64,000 nucleotides of DNA, taken from sequence record NC_041916.1; one strand, given 5' to 3'. The notes beneath the pieces are model-generated. The model worked only from the letters and a program-made list of their open reading frames with translations. It was not told the DNA's origin and did no database searches. Shown piece by piece: positions 22,454 through 33,803 of the stretch; within the stretch, counting starts at the first letter, position 1, and the number at the start of each line of letters is the position of its first letter. A program made the translations under genes and the position numbers.

Positions 22454-22759
22454 CTATTTAAAAAACTTAACTGAAAAACAATGTTGATTAGCTGGCTTAA
22501 TACCTACGTTGACTTCCGTAGGGATACCGTTGGCTTGATCAGCGATAGCCGTTCGAATATGAGCTCGAACAGGAGCAAGGTCGGATGGGGTACCTTGTAC
22601 GTGTTGAACGTGGCTCACATGGTAACCTAATTCGATCAAAGCTTCTTGGATTAAACCGATGGAGGTTTCTGATTCTGCACCGGGCGGTAAAGCATTGCTG
22701 AAATCTGATAAACAGATTCCAACTAAAGATAAGGTTTTGGTCATAATTGTTTCCGTCAT
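22454..22759 (-). CDS. Hypothetical protein (about 100 aa)
   Basis: First gene of the 22.7-20.1 kb operon; the start may be the second Met at 22744. Confidence 0.6.
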   Translation of the reverse strand: MTETIMTKTLSLVGICLSDFSNALPPGAESETSIGLIQEALIELGYHVSHVQHVQGTPSDLAPVRAHIRTAIADQANGIPTEVNVGIKPANQHCFSVKFFK

Positions 22760-22890
22760 TAAAGCGCGTGTAAGGGACTAGATGATTCACATCACAGTTA
22801 TCCTTTACACTGGGTTAGCGTGCATGGTTAAAGAGCCTTAAATGGCGTTACAGGAAGCTTACCGGTGATAGCTAAAAATAATCGGAAAGC

Positions 22891-23384
22891 AAAAAAATAC
22901 CATCTCCCGAAGGAGATGGTCATGCATTTTTTGTCACCTAAGTGACGCATGGAACGCAGTGGTGGTGTCGGAACACCCGAACTGTATTCTCCTAAGGAGA
23001 ACTAATAGGTATTGGAGGACCTATTAGAGAAGAACACAGCCGGCTGTAGAGACAGCAAGTTCGCCACATTTAAAAAATGGCCGGAAGGCGAACGTATCTT
23101 CAGAAGAGGAAAGGGAAAACCTCTAATGAGAATGTGGCGTCCCGTCGAATAGCAGCTCAATCGTGACAAGGGGCACGAACTACCCGACCGGACATAATAA
23201 GTGTCCGTCAATTTTCATTAACGGACGTGCGCTTTATATCTACTGATCTGTAACTAACCAATTGGGGGTTGGTAAGTTTGTGGTGAGACTTACGGCTATC
23301 TGCATCTCTGCCGTGATTCGCGGTAAGTACCTGTAGGTGTTCAAATTCGACATCTGAGCAGACGCTCGATTTATTCTCACCACA
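22891..23384 (-). ncRNA. Candidate ~490-nt structured non-coding RNA (family not recognised)
   Basis: About a dozen hairpins and long-range stems in an otherwise gene-dense genome, including a perfect 10-bp pair (23375-23384 with 23279-23288), a GAAA-capped stem (23203-23226) and a terminal cUUCGg terminator. No credible ORF. Confidence 0.5.
22899..22920 (-). terminator. Rho-independent terminator with a cUUCGg loop
   Basis: Minus strand ACCATCTCC-TTCG-GGAGATGGT followed by ATTTTTTTG. Confidence 0.85.
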
Positions 23385-23400
23385 TAGTATTACACTTCAG

Positions 23401-24105
23401 TTATATAGCGTTGATTAATTTTAGTTGGCGGTACTGCTTAGGACCTACGTCATAACGTTTGGTAAACTGCACAACAAAATAGTGATAGCTTACAAACCCG
23501 CACTCGGTCGCGATTTGTCGAGGTGTCAGTTTAGGTTTAAATAGCAACTTAGCTGCTTCTTCTAAACGCATGGTTACTAAACGTTCTTCGAAAGTACTGT
23601 CATAAACGATCTTCATAATCTCTTGCACTTCTTCTTTGCTGAGATTGAAGTCGTCTTGAACTCGAGTTAGGGTTAACTCAGGTTCGCGGAAGTGTCTGAT
23701 CAGGTATTTACGAAGTTCGTTTTGTGTCACTTCATTGATGCGTTTAGGATAAGTTTCTCGATCACCATCCTTAACTTTGCAGATTATTGATTTACGATAA
23801 TCGGTCGGCGACATCCCAGTGTAGTCTTTAAAACGACGCTCGAAGCTAGCACGAGCACCATAACCAACTTCATCATGAATGGTGAGAGGGTTAATCATGT
23901 CTAGACTAAGAAGGTGTTTAGCGTGTCCCATGCGAGCTTCTACTAACATCTCCTTAACCGATGGGTGGTTATGTTTCTCTAGGAAACGTCCCATGCTTGG
24001 CCCACTCATATTGAGCCGTGCGTAAATCTTAGCGGAGGCTTTGCTTTCTGCAAATAGTTCTTTGACTGCGGCTTCGATTTTTAAAATGGTTTCTTGGGTA
24101 TCCAT
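23401..24105 (-). CDS. AraC/XylS-family protein made of two tandem DNA-binding domains, no sensor domain
   Basis: Two AraC signature ends, VGYGARASFERRFKDYTGMSPTDYRK and IATECGFVSYHYFVVQFTKRYDVGPKQYRQ, each preceded by an R(M)xxAxxLL helix. Confidence 0.85.
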   Translation of the reverse strand: MDTQETILKIEAAVKELFAESKASAKIYARLNMSGPSMGRFLEKHNHPSVKEMLVEARMGHAKHLLSLDMINPLTIHDEVGYGARASFERRFKDYTGMSPTDYRKSIICKVKDGDRETYPKRINEVTQNELRKYLIRHFREPELTLTRVQDDFNLSKEEVQEIMKIVYDSTFEERLVTMRLEEAAKLLFKPKLTPRQIATECGFVSYHYFVVQFTKRYDVGPKQYRQLKLINAI

Positions 24106-24107
24106 AA

Positions 24108-24815
24108 CTACTTACTCTTAAAAGAATTGGCGTACGTTTGAGGATGTGTACGGAATTGTTGTTTAAATAACGTCACGAAGTATTGGAAGGAACATATCCC
24201 TATTTGCCCGTGTATGCTCGTCACATCAATCTTTGGGTTTTCACGGATTAAGTCAGAGGCGATTTTCATTCGTAGCGATTTACGCCAATCCGTGTAGGTC
24301 ATTCCGTAATAGTGTTCGAACATTTCACCCAAACACGACCCCGGTAGTTTAAATCGAGATTCTAGATCTCTCAAGGTGTAGTTACACTGTATGTTTTCGG
24401 TAACGAACTTCTTGATAGACTCTCGAAGTGATTCGGGATATAACACATCCATTTGTGGGACCGAGATAGGTTCAGTAATCACACCCGCATAGAACGTATA
24501 TTCCTCAGTAGGTGTGGTGGAAAAAGATTCCTGATAAACTCGGGTAAATGCGCGGTGCGAGCTGTACCCGCATTCCTTATAGACCGAAGTTGGTTTGACT
24601 CCATTCATCAGTAGCTGCTTGGCATGGCGCATACGAACACCCCGGAGATAAGCCCCGGGGGTGGTATCCAGTTGACGACGAAAGAGGTCAGTGACCCCAT
24701 TCATGCTCATCCCTAGTTGATCGCCGATATCTTTAGCTCGGATGGTACGGTGAAAGTTTTTATCGACCCATTTTAAGGTGTCTTGAAATAATTGTTCTCT
24801 GAACGATTGTTGCAT
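24108..24815 (-). CDS. AraC/XylS-family protein made of two tandem DNA-binding domains
   Basis: RMRHAKQLL...ECGYSSHRAFTRVYQESFSTTP and RMKIASDLI...IGICSFQYFVTLFKQQFRTHPQTY. Confidence 0.85.
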   Translation of the reverse strand: MQQSFREQLFQDTLKWVDKNFHRTIRAKDIGDQLGMSMNGVTDLFRRQLDTTPGAYLRGVRMRHAKQLLMNGVKPTSVYKECGYSSHRAFTRVYQESFSTTPTEEYTFYAGVITEPISVPQMDVLYPESLRESIKKFVTENIQCNYTLRDLESRFKLPGSCLGEMFEHYYGMTYTDWRKSLRMKIASDLIRENPKIDVTSIHGQIGICSFQYFVTLFKQQFRTHPQTYANSFKSK

Positions 24816-24827
24816 GGTAATAAACCT

Positions 24828-25976
24828 TTAATGTAGTTCTATGTTTTTGACTCCGACTTCGATGTACTTTTTGAATTGCTCGGTGTCCTTTAAACGCATT
24901 ACACGTTCTGGATGTTTGCGAGCTTCTGTCGGGGTCAAGCCGAAATGACGTTTAAAAGAAGTACAGAACGAACTGCGCTTGCCACTGGTCGCTACGCTGA
25001 AAATACGTTCCATACTCCATTTGGTGTTTAGAATAAGGTATAGTGAAGCTTCGAGTTCTAATGCACGGTAAACACATTTAGCGTTCATCCCAGTGGCGTG
25101 TAAGAACATCTTAGTCCAATTACCGTAATGAACACCGTAGAACTTTTGGATGTCTCGGATAGGTTGATGGTCTGTAAAGACTTCTTCCGCGAGGTGTTCT
25201 AAGATCTCATCCATCAAATGTTGGTTAACCCAACGTTGCTCCCCACACACTATCGCGGTAAAACCGTAGCTGTGTTCACGACCGTAGTCGAACGTCGTCT
25301 TCCCGTAATACTTTTTAAACATGAGATTAAAACCAGTGATGCGGGTTTGACGAACGTGTTTTAAAATAGTACGTTTGATCCAACCTCTCTGTTCAATCTG
25401 CTTAGCAATGTGATCACATTGTATCTTAATCAAGTATTCCTTAGGGTAGAGTCCGTTGGCTCGTTTAAAAGCACGGCGAACACTGACATCAGCAAATACC
25501 GTATCTTCCATCACTTCACTGACATTAACGATACGGGTGAAGTTTTGATCAATCACTTCCTTTAAACGAATCGCCACTTCGTTCGGGGTGTCAGTTGAAG
25601 GGGATTTACCTTCGGTCTCCATCTTAAACGCGATGCGATGTTTAATCGGTGATAACTTAGCGTGATGGATGTACCAATTCGTAAAGCGATGGACGTTTTC
25701 ATAAAGTAAGTCTTTCATGATCTCGCTAATAGGACGATCGGTTCGAGTAACTTCATGCATAGCGTATTCGCTGCGAAGTTTACCTAAGTAGTATTTAGGG
25801 CTTTCCAACCCATCCCTTGCAAACGCGTAACGTAATTGGTGAGGTCCAACGTTAAACGTTTCAGCGACATCCCGTGCCATGGTAATCGATTTAAAATTAT
25901 GCTTGATGTAATCGAGCGTGCGTTTTACCAATGCATCTTGGGTTTCTGGTAAAGAAGGAATGTAAGCAACGGACAT
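24828..25976 (-). CDS. AraC/XylS-family protein made of three tandem, more divergent DNA-binding domains
   Basis: Three ~100-aa units starting LDYIKHNF, LKEVIDQNF and ILEHLAEEVF, and ending F..W..HAKLSP.KHR, F.LMFKKYYGKT..DY and F..SFKRHFGLTPTEARK. Confidence 0.8.
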   Translation of the reverse strand: MSVAYIPSLPETQDALVKRTLDYIKHNFKSITMARDVAETFNVGPHQLRYAFARDGLESPKYYLGKLRSEYAMHEVTRTDRPISEIMKDLLYENVHRFTNWYIHHAKLSPIKHRIAFKMETEGKSPSTDTPNEVAIRLKEVIDQNFTRIVNVSEVMEDTVFADVSVRRAFKRANGLYPKEYLIKIQCDHIAKQIEQRGWIKRTILKHVRQTRITGFNLMFKKYYGKTTFDYGREHSYGFTAIVCGEQRWVNQHLMDEILEHLAEEVFTDHQPIRDIQKFYGVHYGNWTKMFLHATGMNAKCVYRALELEASLYLILNTKWSMERIFSVATSGKRSSFCTSFKRHFGLTPTEARKHPERVMRLKDTEQFKKYIEVGVKNIELH

Positions 25977-33135: not shown

Positions 33136-33780
33136 CTAATCATTGGTGTCTTTAGATACATAACGGTACACTTCACCACGAGTCATTTCCGTGACTTGAA
33201 CGTGTCCAGTGATGCCGGTGTCTTCAAAACGAAATACGGCGGTGGGTTTAGATAAAAAGAATCCGTCTTTAACGATGAAGGAAACTTTACGGTTAGGGAG
33301 TAGTTCGTATTCCCCCATGATCTTGTTTCCTAAGAAGTCGCTAAGGAAGTTAGGACGGATAGGGTGCTGACGAATAGAAACGTTATCCACCATATGCTTA
33401 CGGTAGTTTTGCAATTTCTCTAAGGTCAGTTGTTCATCAAAGAGTTTGTCGAAACTGCGGTACAACGTCGTCATCAGTTCTTCGACTTCTAAACGTTCAT
33501 TGGGATCCACGATCTCCCAAACCTCGTTATAGATGTCTGGATGAGATACCGATAAAGCGTCTGCGTTTTTGATCATCACACGAATCCCCGTTTCTTTGTT
33601 TTCTAAACAAATGATGAAGTGTTTATTCATGAGATGAATTTTAACTAGTGTAACCAAGCGCTCCTTGATCACACGGCGTTGGTAAATCTTCAGTACTTCA
33701 GGTAACTGTGTAGCCAAGTCATGCAGTAGTACTGTACCAGCGTATTGTTTGGCTTCCAAAGGTGTCATTGTTTCCTCCAA
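33136..33780 (-). CDS. Hypothetical protein (214 aa)
   Basis: GGAGG SD with an early promoter motif upstream. Confidence 0.75.
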   Translation of the reverse strand: MEETMTPLEAKQYAGTVLLHDLATQLPEVLKIYQRRVIKERLVTLVKIHLMNKHFIICLENKETGIRVMIKNADALSVSHPDIYNEVWEIVDPNERLEVEELMTTLYRSFDKLFDEQLTLEKLQNYRKHMVDNVSIRQHPIRPNFLSDFLGNKIMGEYELLPNRKVSFIVKDGFFLSKPTAVFRFEDTGITGHVQVTEMTRGEVYRYVSKDTND

Positions 33781-33803
33781 TGTTTAAATAAATAACGGGC
33801 ACA

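Follow-up and report, generated by a model that had tools for sequence, protein, structure and literature searches.

Vibrio phage pTD1 is a nucleus-forming jumbo phage belonging to the genus Tidunavirus of the subfamily Gorgonvirinae. The 64,000 nucleotides (nt) analysed here (record NC_041916.1, called the window below; a window coordinate is the coordinate in record AP017972.1 minus 124000) come from this phage, and the 641 bases around the element described are 100% identical to AP017972.1. Directly 3' of a cluster of AraC-type genes, the window carries a unit of 493 nt which is very probably a real structured RNA gene of a new family. That this RNA is a separately transcribed non-coding RNA (ncRNA) of a new family, acting in trans, is put at about an even chance. 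A sequence-only reading had proposed a discrete structured RNA in this place; such a non-coding unit, bounded by a TATG and a terminator, is indeed present, and the homologous spacers collected from relatives carry both the element and its covariation in nine lineages.

A blastn search with the element finds pTD1 and VP4B only, and tblastn searches with the flanking proteins find the same gene order in all Gorgonvirinae isolates. The isolates compared were VP4B, phiKT1028 and phiKT1019 (KT1028 and KT1019 below), PDCC-1, Aphrodite1, 2 TSL-2019, 5 TSL-2019 and USC-1. Further lineages were obtained from assemblies (Logan) of the Sequence Read Archive (SRA) by means of protein look-ups: near-identical pTD1 variants (L065 and L066), a VP4B-like phage (L063), PDCC-1-like phages (L069 and L071) and two divergent lineages in which the phage tubulin PhuZ is present (L068 and L095). 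Consequently, nine distinct lineages from both Gorgonvirinae genera can be compared, among which the pairwise identity of the element is 56-89%. The third AraC-type gene is followed by 500-680 unannotated bases in each isolate, and in all nine lineages a homologous unit of 428-572 nt lies directly 3' of this gene, opens at an invariant TATG and closes at an intrinsic terminator. The conserved blocks in the alignment are the TATG(T) start, GAAMA...GGUGUAUACCGCG, GUAUAAAGCGCA, AGCCGGCU, CAGUUCGGGU, CACUGCUUU and the terminator followed by U6-GC. The sequence between these blocks varies freely, with insertions and deletions that are not multiples of three.

The stretch 22891-23400 (510 bases) folds on the minus strand with a minimum free energy of -183.2 kcal/mol, compared with -129.8 +/- 6.0 for dinucleotide shuffles (z -8.9), and on the plus strand with a z of -6.0, so that folding is beyond chance. 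In seven relatives, the z-scores are -3.5 to -8.2 for the sense and -2.1 to -5.2 for the antisense strand, the sense strand being always the stronger. In addition, a hand-curated table of nine helices (P1, P3, a mini-hairpin, Pb, Pc, P7, P8, P9 and the terminator) contains 479 cells; 99% of them are canonical, and G·U occurs in 37, C·A in one. These counts, the z-scores of the sense strand and the direction of the terminator with its U run place the RNA on the minus strand, which is also that of the genes, and rule out a plus-strand RNA; the strand evidence had seemed mixed to the sequence-only reading. Because G·U pairs would be C·A on the other strand, they and the compensatory changes point to selection on a single-stranded transcript of one strand.

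The stems which that reading listed are present in the DNA: exact inverted repeats occur at 23279-23288/23375-23384 (10 nt), 22899-22907/22912-22920 (the terminator), 23002-23010/23019-23027 and 23062-23070/23131-23139, and a terminator scan finds the GAAA-capped stem at 23203-23226. The listed hairpin at 22987-23001 is specific to pTD1 and not conserved, although its second half coincides with the 3' strand of P8, which is. The parts of the RNA are the following, from its 5' to its 3' end.

22891-23383, minus strand: complete RNA of 493 nt, its first base being the G of the invariant TATG and its last base that of the terminator U run
23383-23386, minus strand: TATG, putative core of a phiKZ-type late (nvRNAP) promoter with +1 at G 23383, invariant in 9/9 lineages
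23375-23383, minus strand: 5' strand of P1, GUGGUGAGA, closing the 104-nt 5' domain; 97-98% of cells paired
23316-23346, minus strand: apex of the 5' domain, P3 (AUUUG/CGAAU) around the conserved GAACA and the mini-hairpin GGUACUUACC, then GCG (alignment and hand table)
23280-23288, minus strand: 3' strand of P1, UCUCACCAC (covariation; exact inverted repeat)
23254-23271, minus strand: hairpin H2 (CAACC...GGUUaG), compared by eye
23228-23240, minus strand: conserved single-stranded block GAUAUAAAGCGCA
23203-23226, minus strand: hairpin Pb (GUCCGUUAAU-GAAA-AUUGACGGAC), from the terminator scan and hand table
23139-23193, minus strand: long hairpin Pc (apical CGAU(U)GAG motif), which every lineage has, on stems of unrelated sequence
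23059-23129, minus strand: variable central part with Pd (23100-23129) and Pe (23059-23093), Pe competing with a 9-base-pair (bp) helix, 23131-23139/23062-23070
23043-23056, minus strand: hairpin P7 (GCUGU-CUCU-ACAGC), whose 3' end gives the AGC of the near-invariant AGCCGGCU (hand table)
22978-23042, minus strand: long stem P8 (CGG CUGUGUUCUU ... GAGAAUACAG U UCG), from covariation
23011-23018, minus strand: loop CCUCCAAU, anti-Shine-Dalgarno-like, CUCC(A/C) being in a loop in every lineage
22964-22977, minus strand: hairpin P9 (GGUGU-UCCG-ACACC), abutting P8 (covariation and hand table)
22953-22961, minus strand: conserved block CACUGC(G/U)UU, missing in L068 and altered in L095 (CAACUGUUCC)
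22921-22951, minus strand: penultimate hairpin (CAUGC-GUCAC-UUAG-GUGAC...GCAUG), Tidunavirus type only
22891-22920, minus strand: intrinsic terminator ACCAUCUCC-UUCG-GGAGAUGGU with a 9-bp stem, then AUUUUUUU (terminator scan)

In every lineage the helix P1, which pairs RNA positions 1-9 with 96-104, opens with the G of TATG; its sequence is a different one in nearly all of them: GUGGUGAGA/UCUCACCAC in pTD1, GUGGGU/ACCCAC in VP4B, GUGAACAGA/UCUGUUCAC in KT1028, GUAAGCGAU/GUCGCUUAC in KT1019, GUGAGCGGU/ACCGCUCAC in PDCC-1 and Aphrodite1, GUGAGCAAG.../CUUcGCUCAC in L068 and GUAGGGA/UCCCUAC in L095. Two covariance models were made, R1 for the 5' domain and R2 for the 3' core, and when ten sequences are re-aligned with R1, P1 is 97.6% paired and six of its nine pairs are changed on both sides. 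For the whole 5' domain, none of 500 shuffles reaches the observed covariation score, and pairing amounts to 84% versus 31-48% in slid controls. P1 encloses the conserved apex GAACA...GGUnnnnACCGCG; GAAMA...GGUnnnUnCCGC is found in all nine aligned sequences, which represent six of the lineages, and the apical mini-hairpin is 100% paired in the R1-based alignment. The complementarity of TCTGC and GCAGA, which had been pointed out from the pTD1 letters, turned out to be a nested helix of this domain, P1b, with an Aphroditevirus-type equivalent (UAGCU/AGUUA).

The 3' core is built of P7, P8 and P9, which abut without spacers: the AGC of AGCCGGCU ends P7, CGGCU opens P8, AG-U-UCG closes P8 and the following base opens P9. 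The strands of P8 are CGG-CUGNGUUCUU and AAGAANNCAG-U-UCG, and in the Tidunavirus type an extra hairpin (23002-23027) is inserted. Aligned with plain MAFFT, the 13 pairs of P8 are paired in 100% of 101 cells, compared with 20-55% in slid controls; none of 500 shuffles reaches the observed percentage or covariation score, and one position shows three pair types (U-A, A-U and G-C). Among the variants of P9 are GAUAC/GUAUC, GGUAC/GUACU and AGUAC/GUGCU. Along the junction, AGCCGGCU is near-invariant (one substitution, in L095) and AGUUCG invariant, the latter being followed by G in seven lineages and A in two. This change of UCGG to UCGA occurs in L068 and L095, and the A of L068 pairs with the U ending P9 (AGUAC/GUGCU). 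In L095, a C-to-U change turns AGCCGGCU into AGUCGGCU, and a G-to-A change at the 5' end of P7 provides the partner of the U (ACUGC/GCAGU). These natural variants support the described arrangement of the core. An extended rod, formed by the P7 3' strand and the P9 5' strand in place of both hairpins, was considered and rejected as the conserved fold, because P9 covaries in all lineages and because the UCGA (L068 and L095) and CCGG-to-UCGG (L095) changes are compensated in P9 and P7. The rod pairing is possible in both genera, and both folds may be used.

The penultimate hairpin reads GUUC-UUAG-GAAC in KT1028 and is missing in the Aphroditevirus type. The terminator (on the minus strand of the DNA ACCATCTCCTTCGGGAGATGGT and then a T run, that is, ACCATCTCC-TTCG-GGAGATGGT and then ATTTTTTT) keeps its stem with compensatory changes in all lineages.

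Between the two domains, H2 corresponds to CACCC/GGGUG in VP4B and CAUCC/GGGUG in KT1028 and is missing in the Aphrodite1 type; the block GUAUAAAG(C/U)GCA is present in seven of the nine lineages and missing in the Aphrodite1 type and L068. The stem of Pb stays paired with a completely different sequence in VP4B, KT1019 and PDCC-1. The registers of Pb and Pc are not strictly homologous, so their double changes show only that a hairpin of unrelated sequence occupies the same place. Pe covaries among the Tidunavirus-type lineages (GUUCGCC/GGCGAAC in pTD1, GUUCACCU/AGGUGAAU in VP4B and ACCCACCC/GGGUGGGU in L063). The RNAs of Aphrodite1, 5 TSL-2019 and USC-1 are about 140 nt shorter (L009:1531-2028 versus L010:1602-2239) and have neither H2, the GUAUAAAGCGCA block and Pb nor one more hairpin, which are thus dispensable in at least one lineage.

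A protein-coding or decayed gene was rejected as the source of this conservation, as no open reading frame (ORF) is conserved, each frame is interrupted by stops and indel lengths are not multiples of three. ORFs of at least 25 amino acids (aa) lie at differing places among the lineages, with 1-19 stops per frame. An ORF starting from the +1 GUG spans 47-60 aa in some lineages and 25 aa in KT1028, and is not open in VP4B, L063, KT1019 and L068. Antisense "hypothetical protein" genes of 35-37 aa have been called inside the RNA (L012:3989-4102, L013:3989-4102 and L068:3899-4006, all on the minus strand of those records); these small genes, in 5 TSL-2019, USC-1 and one SRA contig, are unconserved and probably spurious.

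The models give independent support as well. R1, trained without L063, L068 and L095, recovers them at the predicted places (E about 8e-9, 2e-9 and 1e-5, respectively), and R2, trained without L095, recovers L095 likewise (E 2e-9); each model has exactly one significant site in the window. Outside the subfamily, neither R1, R2 nor the motif cluster gave a match upstream of PhuZ in Klebsiella phage Miami, Aeromonas phage ACP1, Pseudomonas phage EL or Erwinia phage Joad. An exact 20-mer found in IMG/VR pTD1, VP4B and one chance match (L004, a high-GC coding region), and the 5'-domain pattern gave 51 loci there, of which the known isolates alone pass R1. In GTDB genomes and JGI metagenomes, the 19 loci matching the 5' pattern are all due to chance, and the 3' pattern gave no match in JGI metagenomes. 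Three pattern loci (L089, L090 and L094, from JGI metagenome Ga0082212) are unrelated coding sequence of an IS630-like transposase, in which TGGTGTATACCGCC encodes W-C-I-P. A search of IMG/VR with the AraC protein found pTD1 itself only, and no similarity to the element was found in Escherichia coli genomes or plasmids. As far as seen, the family appears confined to Gorgonvirinae-like vibriophages, the same set that has the trio of AraC-type genes.

Klebsiella phage Miami has, upstream of PhuZ, a gene-poor stretch of 1.5 kb whose only ORFs are tiny and on the opposite strand and which is closed by a strong terminator (L072:3338-3372). In it lies a sub-threshold match to the type III hammerhead ribozyme (L072:2238-2290, plus strand; 23.7 bits versus a gathering threshold of 48.5, E 0.69) with a CUGAUGA...GAAAC core, so this phage may have a different, unrelated RNA at the equivalent place.

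No known family matches the element. Rfam 15 (cmscan) gave no match at the gathering threshold in the whole window, none at E<=10 on 22700-23450 and, at E<=5, none on the loci from four further lineages, the families covered including tmRNA, RNase P, 6S, group I/II introns, GOLLD, ROOL, OLE, HEARO, raiA, pRNA and hammerhead. This disposes of a tmRNA or an intron remnant, either of which would have spoken against a new RNA. In the searched papers that name these phage taxa no mention of the element was found. The novelty is, as far as seen, at the level of an RNA family or class.

How the RNA may be made is suggested by its ends. The late (nvRNAP) promoters of phiKZ have the consensus TATG, the last G being the start site (PMC4666361), and the TATG of the element fits this. 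The sequence-only reading had made the same comparison and placed the G at the second base of the closing stem; at the sequence level it is the first paired base of P1 in every lineage, as expected if this G is the RNA 5' end. Transcription would run from G 23383 to the terminator at 22899-22920 and its U run.

For its action, we propose that the RNA would work in trans as a stable structured RNA, with the near-invariant junction and 5' apex as recognition surfaces for a phage or host partner, and that an exposed CUCCAA loop could pair with GGAG-type ribosome-binding sites (RBSs) of mRNAs in the manner of RNAIII. CCUCC is the core of the anti-Shine-Dalgarno sequence of 16S rRNA. All nine lineages have CUCC(A/C) in the loop of a predicted hairpin, though not of the same one. 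In the Tidunavirus type, the loop UCCUCCAAU is on the hairpin inserted at the tip of P8; in L095, CCUCCAA is the terminal loop of P8 itself; in KT1019, L068, PDCC-1 and Aphrodite1, a central-domain hairpin carries (A)GCUCCAA or GCUCCCA. The predicted mean unpaired probability of the loop is 0.8-1.0 in five lineages and 0.34-0.80 in L068, PDCC-1 and Aphrodite1 (homologous hairpin iv) and partly KT1019. Since the loop motif is kept while its carrier hairpin changes, it looks functional; a trans-acting RNA with an anti-Shine-Dalgarno mechanism is still a tentative proposal, with the chances rather against it. The PDCC-1-type RNAs have a second copy of the loop motif (GCCUCCAAAU) in an extra domain.

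One RBS in the window, AUUGGAGGA (33768-33785, minus strand), is complementary over 9 nt to the loop UCCUCCAAU. It belongs to a Tidunavirus-specific gene of 210 aa starting at 33768 (PHROG 35994), and the loop-to-RBS pairing is a lead only.

Several points weigh against a separately transcribed RNA acting in trans through this loop. TTGGAGG sites are not enriched in the window (5 versus 6.7 expected), and CUCCA is a short motif. The orthologous RBS of the 33768 gene is complementary over 7 nt in VP4B and over 7 nt in a shifted register in KT1028. Regarding the structure, P2 and P3 are only 66-67% paired in the R1-based alignment, P3 faring better in the hand table because a bulge shifts its register. 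Neither MAFFT nor a custom structure-profile aligner could align the central domain between the genera, which is why the counts for P7 and P9 rest on the hand-made table. Concerning the start, TATG is only a 4-mer, and no recurrent upstream motif occurs in the window. No transcriptome was found in the Gorgonvirinae literature searched, so start, timing, abundance and the discrete transcript are deduced from sequence. Finally, the terminator lies only about 40 nt (Aphroditevirus type, before the PhuZ start) or 130 nt (pTD1) before the next start codon, which also fits a cis-acting leader.

Such a leader or attenuator of the downstream gene (PhuZ or the gene of 97-101 aa) is the best of the alternatives, although it is unlikely. 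The terminator would then be a regulated stop of the riboswitch or T-box kind, where a ligand, a protein or an alternative fold sets how much is read through. Besides the short distance, a recurrent promoter motif after the terminator is neither found in the spacer nor enriched in the window; the AT-rich block 3' of the terminator, however, is conserved in both genera and may be the promoter of the next gene. In the 3' core, a segment B (ACAGC or UAGC) complements, by eye and in both genera, a segment A (P7) and a segment C (the start of P9). The sequence-only reading, for its part, had seen two pairs of mutually exclusive pairings and a possible RNA switch. The first, in which CGGAC (23203-23207) pairs with the downstream GUCCG in place of Pb, is worth -8.9 kcal/mol in pTD1 and only -2.0 to -5.6 in VP4B, L063 and KT1028, Pb itself being what is conserved. 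The second, in which CGCC pairs either within Pe or within the 9-bp helix CGCCACAUU/AAUGUGGCG, fares better: this helix is kept in L063 with a compensatory G-C to A-U change (-11.5 kcal/mol), but in VP4B and KT1028 it is down to about 4 bp and the alternative is lost. As the first alternative is specific to pTD1 and the second occurs in one further lineage, an RNA switch is not established. The 9-bp helix takes the place of the Aphroditevirus-type CCCU/AGGG helix, which closes a multi-hairpin central domain; it may be the ordinary closing helix of that domain or one arm of a real alternative. Moreover, a length of 430-570 nt far exceeds that of known leaders, no competitor of the terminator stem is conserved (5-6-nt matches only, by eye), and the element is not associated with one gene, being unchanged whether PhuZ or the small gene lies behind it. 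Riboswitch and T-box leaders are like the pTD1 RNA in being structured, in having an intrinsic terminator shortly before a start codon and in some alternative pairings; the pTD1 RNA differs in that it is 2-5 times longer, shows by eye no conserved anti-terminator, has a variable downstream gene and has no Rfam match.

The RNA could also be the 3' untranslated region (3' UTR) of the AraC operon, that is, a stabilising tail of the mRNA or a cut-out 3' UTR-derived RNA, which may feed back on the AraC regulators. It begins on the same strand 17 nt past the AraC stop codon in pTD1 and 10-40 nt past it in the other lineages, the terminator scan finds no terminator between the AraC gene and the RNA, and both share the same narrow distribution. 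The invariant TATG exactly at the first base of P1, however, argues for an own start or a defined 5' end, and this origin is somewhat less probable still than a leader. The sequence-only reading had suggested a functional link to the AraC genes; the adjacency is strictly conserved, but this co-occurrence is the sole basis for the link, and AraC-family proteins are DNA binders (Pfam HTH_18).

That the RNA belongs to a new catalytic or ribonucleoprotein class is improbable; it would then be a ribozyme or the RNA subunit of a phage machine, as the pRNA of phi29 is for the packaging motor, with the junction as active or binding core. The RNA is large and multi-domain and has near-invariant bases at the junction (AGCCGGCU/AGUUCG) and apex (GGUGUAUACCGCG), the helices merely covarying, and AGCCGGCU, a palindrome, could in principle mediate RNA-RNA dimerisation. 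In the conserved fold, however, the palindrome is base-paired within P7 and P8 and not exposed, the ribozyme, RNase P and pRNA models of Rfam have no match at E<=10, and no packaging or RNA-processing gene adjoins the RNA (Pfam and PHROGs). The weakest alternative, a DNA-level element (an origin, a packaging site or protein-binding palindromes) or a decayed gene or hairpin-rich spacer without RNA function, has an 8-bp palindrome and a replication-gene neighbourhood (DNA polymerase and chimallin a few kb off in related contigs) in its favour, but is very improbable in view of the compensatory changes in many helices, the G·U pairs and the absence of iterons or direct repeats, of a GC-skew turn at the element and of a coding remnant; a replication origin was rejected on the skew and the iterons.

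A separately transcribed, trans-acting RNA may be compared with large RNAs of other systems. GOLLD, ROOL, OLE and raiA are similarly several hundred nt long with many covarying helices and conserved junction or loop bases; some are phage-encoded, and they were found by comparative sequence analysis before their function. They differ in that the pTD1 RNA has no cmscan match to them and is restricted to one subfamily of jumbo vibriophages. GOLLD and ROOL often adjoin tRNA genes, whereas neither a tRNA nor a tmRNA gene is present in the 64-kb window. RNAIII of Staphylococcus aureus is a multi-hairpin regulator of 514 nt, which encodes delta-haemolysin and whose C-rich loops pair with Shine-Dalgarno sequences. 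Its size, its modular string of hairpins and a C-rich loop complementary to GGAG-type sites (here CCUCCAA) are alike, but there is no homology, and the pTD1 RNA has neither a conserved small ORF nor a convincingly conserved target; the resemblance is hypothesised to be functional only. The pRNA of phi29, about 120-174 nt long, forms rings through loop-loop pairing. It is likewise a phage-encoded structured RNA, with a structural and not a regulatory role, and the palindromic element of the pTD1 RNA could support multimerisation; this palindrome is, however, paired in P7/P8, and the pTD1 RNA matches no Rfam pRNA model and is not near packaging genes.

Among chimalliviruses, the ncRNAs described are species of <250 nt derived from the 5' UTR upstream of a tail gene (PMC11512511), and a 75-nt ncRNA predicted in phiKZ could not be confirmed (PMC8244752). 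The small RNA upstream of the tail gene gp182 was found by transcript mapping in phiKZ, 201phi2-1, EL and PA3 (PMC11512511). It is, like the present element, a conserved chimallivirus ncRNA with a terminator, its start being mapped and its terminator premature. It differs in size and place: the RNA family of pTD1 is 430-570 nt long, lies between AraC-type genes and PhuZ, and has no member near PhuZ in EL, Miami, ACP1 or Joad.

The genes flanking the RNA are all on the minus strand, and in contigs of related phages the chimallin gene is within a few kb of the element. The neighbours in the window are the following.

23401-25976, minus strand: three tandem AraC-type genes, directly upstream of the RNA (Pfam HTH_18 and PHROGs)
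22454-22759, minus strand: next gene downstream, hypothetical, 101 aa (gene order compared across lineages)

The AraC-type genes (23401-24105, 24108-24815 and 24828-25976) each match HTH_18 and PHROG 7620 ("transcriptional regulator"). Their products are paralogues of 234, 235 and 382 aa, each with two HTH_18 stretches and no recognisable ligand domain, and the trio is common to all Gorgonvirinae lineages recovered. Outside the subfamily, the third AraC-type protein gave only partial tblastn matches, in two Acinetobacter phage records. The GenBank coding sequence of the last AraC gene (BAW98349.1, 594 nt) is shorter than the 705-nt ORF which matches VP4B.

The gene 3' of the RNA is PhuZ in five lineages and the gene of 97-101 aa in four; in Aphroditevirus-type phages the small gene is also present, separated from the RNA by PhuZ. 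PhuZ is cleanly missing from pTD1, VP4B, phiKT1028 and L063 (window 22760-22890 versus L008:2601-3566, L009:2029-2994 and L010:2240-3205), and the RNA and its terminator are unaffected where PhuZ was lost. The loss in pTD1 and phiKT1028 has been published (PMC11724907), and Tidunavirus without PhuZ is also described in PMC10587174.

Few RNAs longer than 400 nt have many covarying helices; those with known roles (rRNA, RNase P, tmRNA and group I/II introns) do fundamental jobs, while orphan large RNAs such as OLE, GOLLD, ROOL and raiA are under active study. Existing records also gain in annotation, since the antisense "hypothetical protein" calls inside the RNA are probably spurious. Nucleus-forming phages part transcription from translation by a protein shell, and little is known of their non-coding RNAs. 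The element described here is a well-defined RNA with a testable structure, kept where PhuZ was lost, and is found in phages applied in aquaculture phage therapy. It is conceivable, though the odds are against it, that this RNA is the first example of a new class of large structured RNAs peculiar to one lineage of nucleus-forming phages, a product of the phage polymerase with a dedicated job in the compartmentalised infection. This job could lie in the cytoplasm, where the RNA would regulate translation or serve as an anti-Shine-Dalgarno sponge; alternatively, it could be the RNA part of a phage ribonucleoprotein. Its 3' or central domain could be genuinely bistable.

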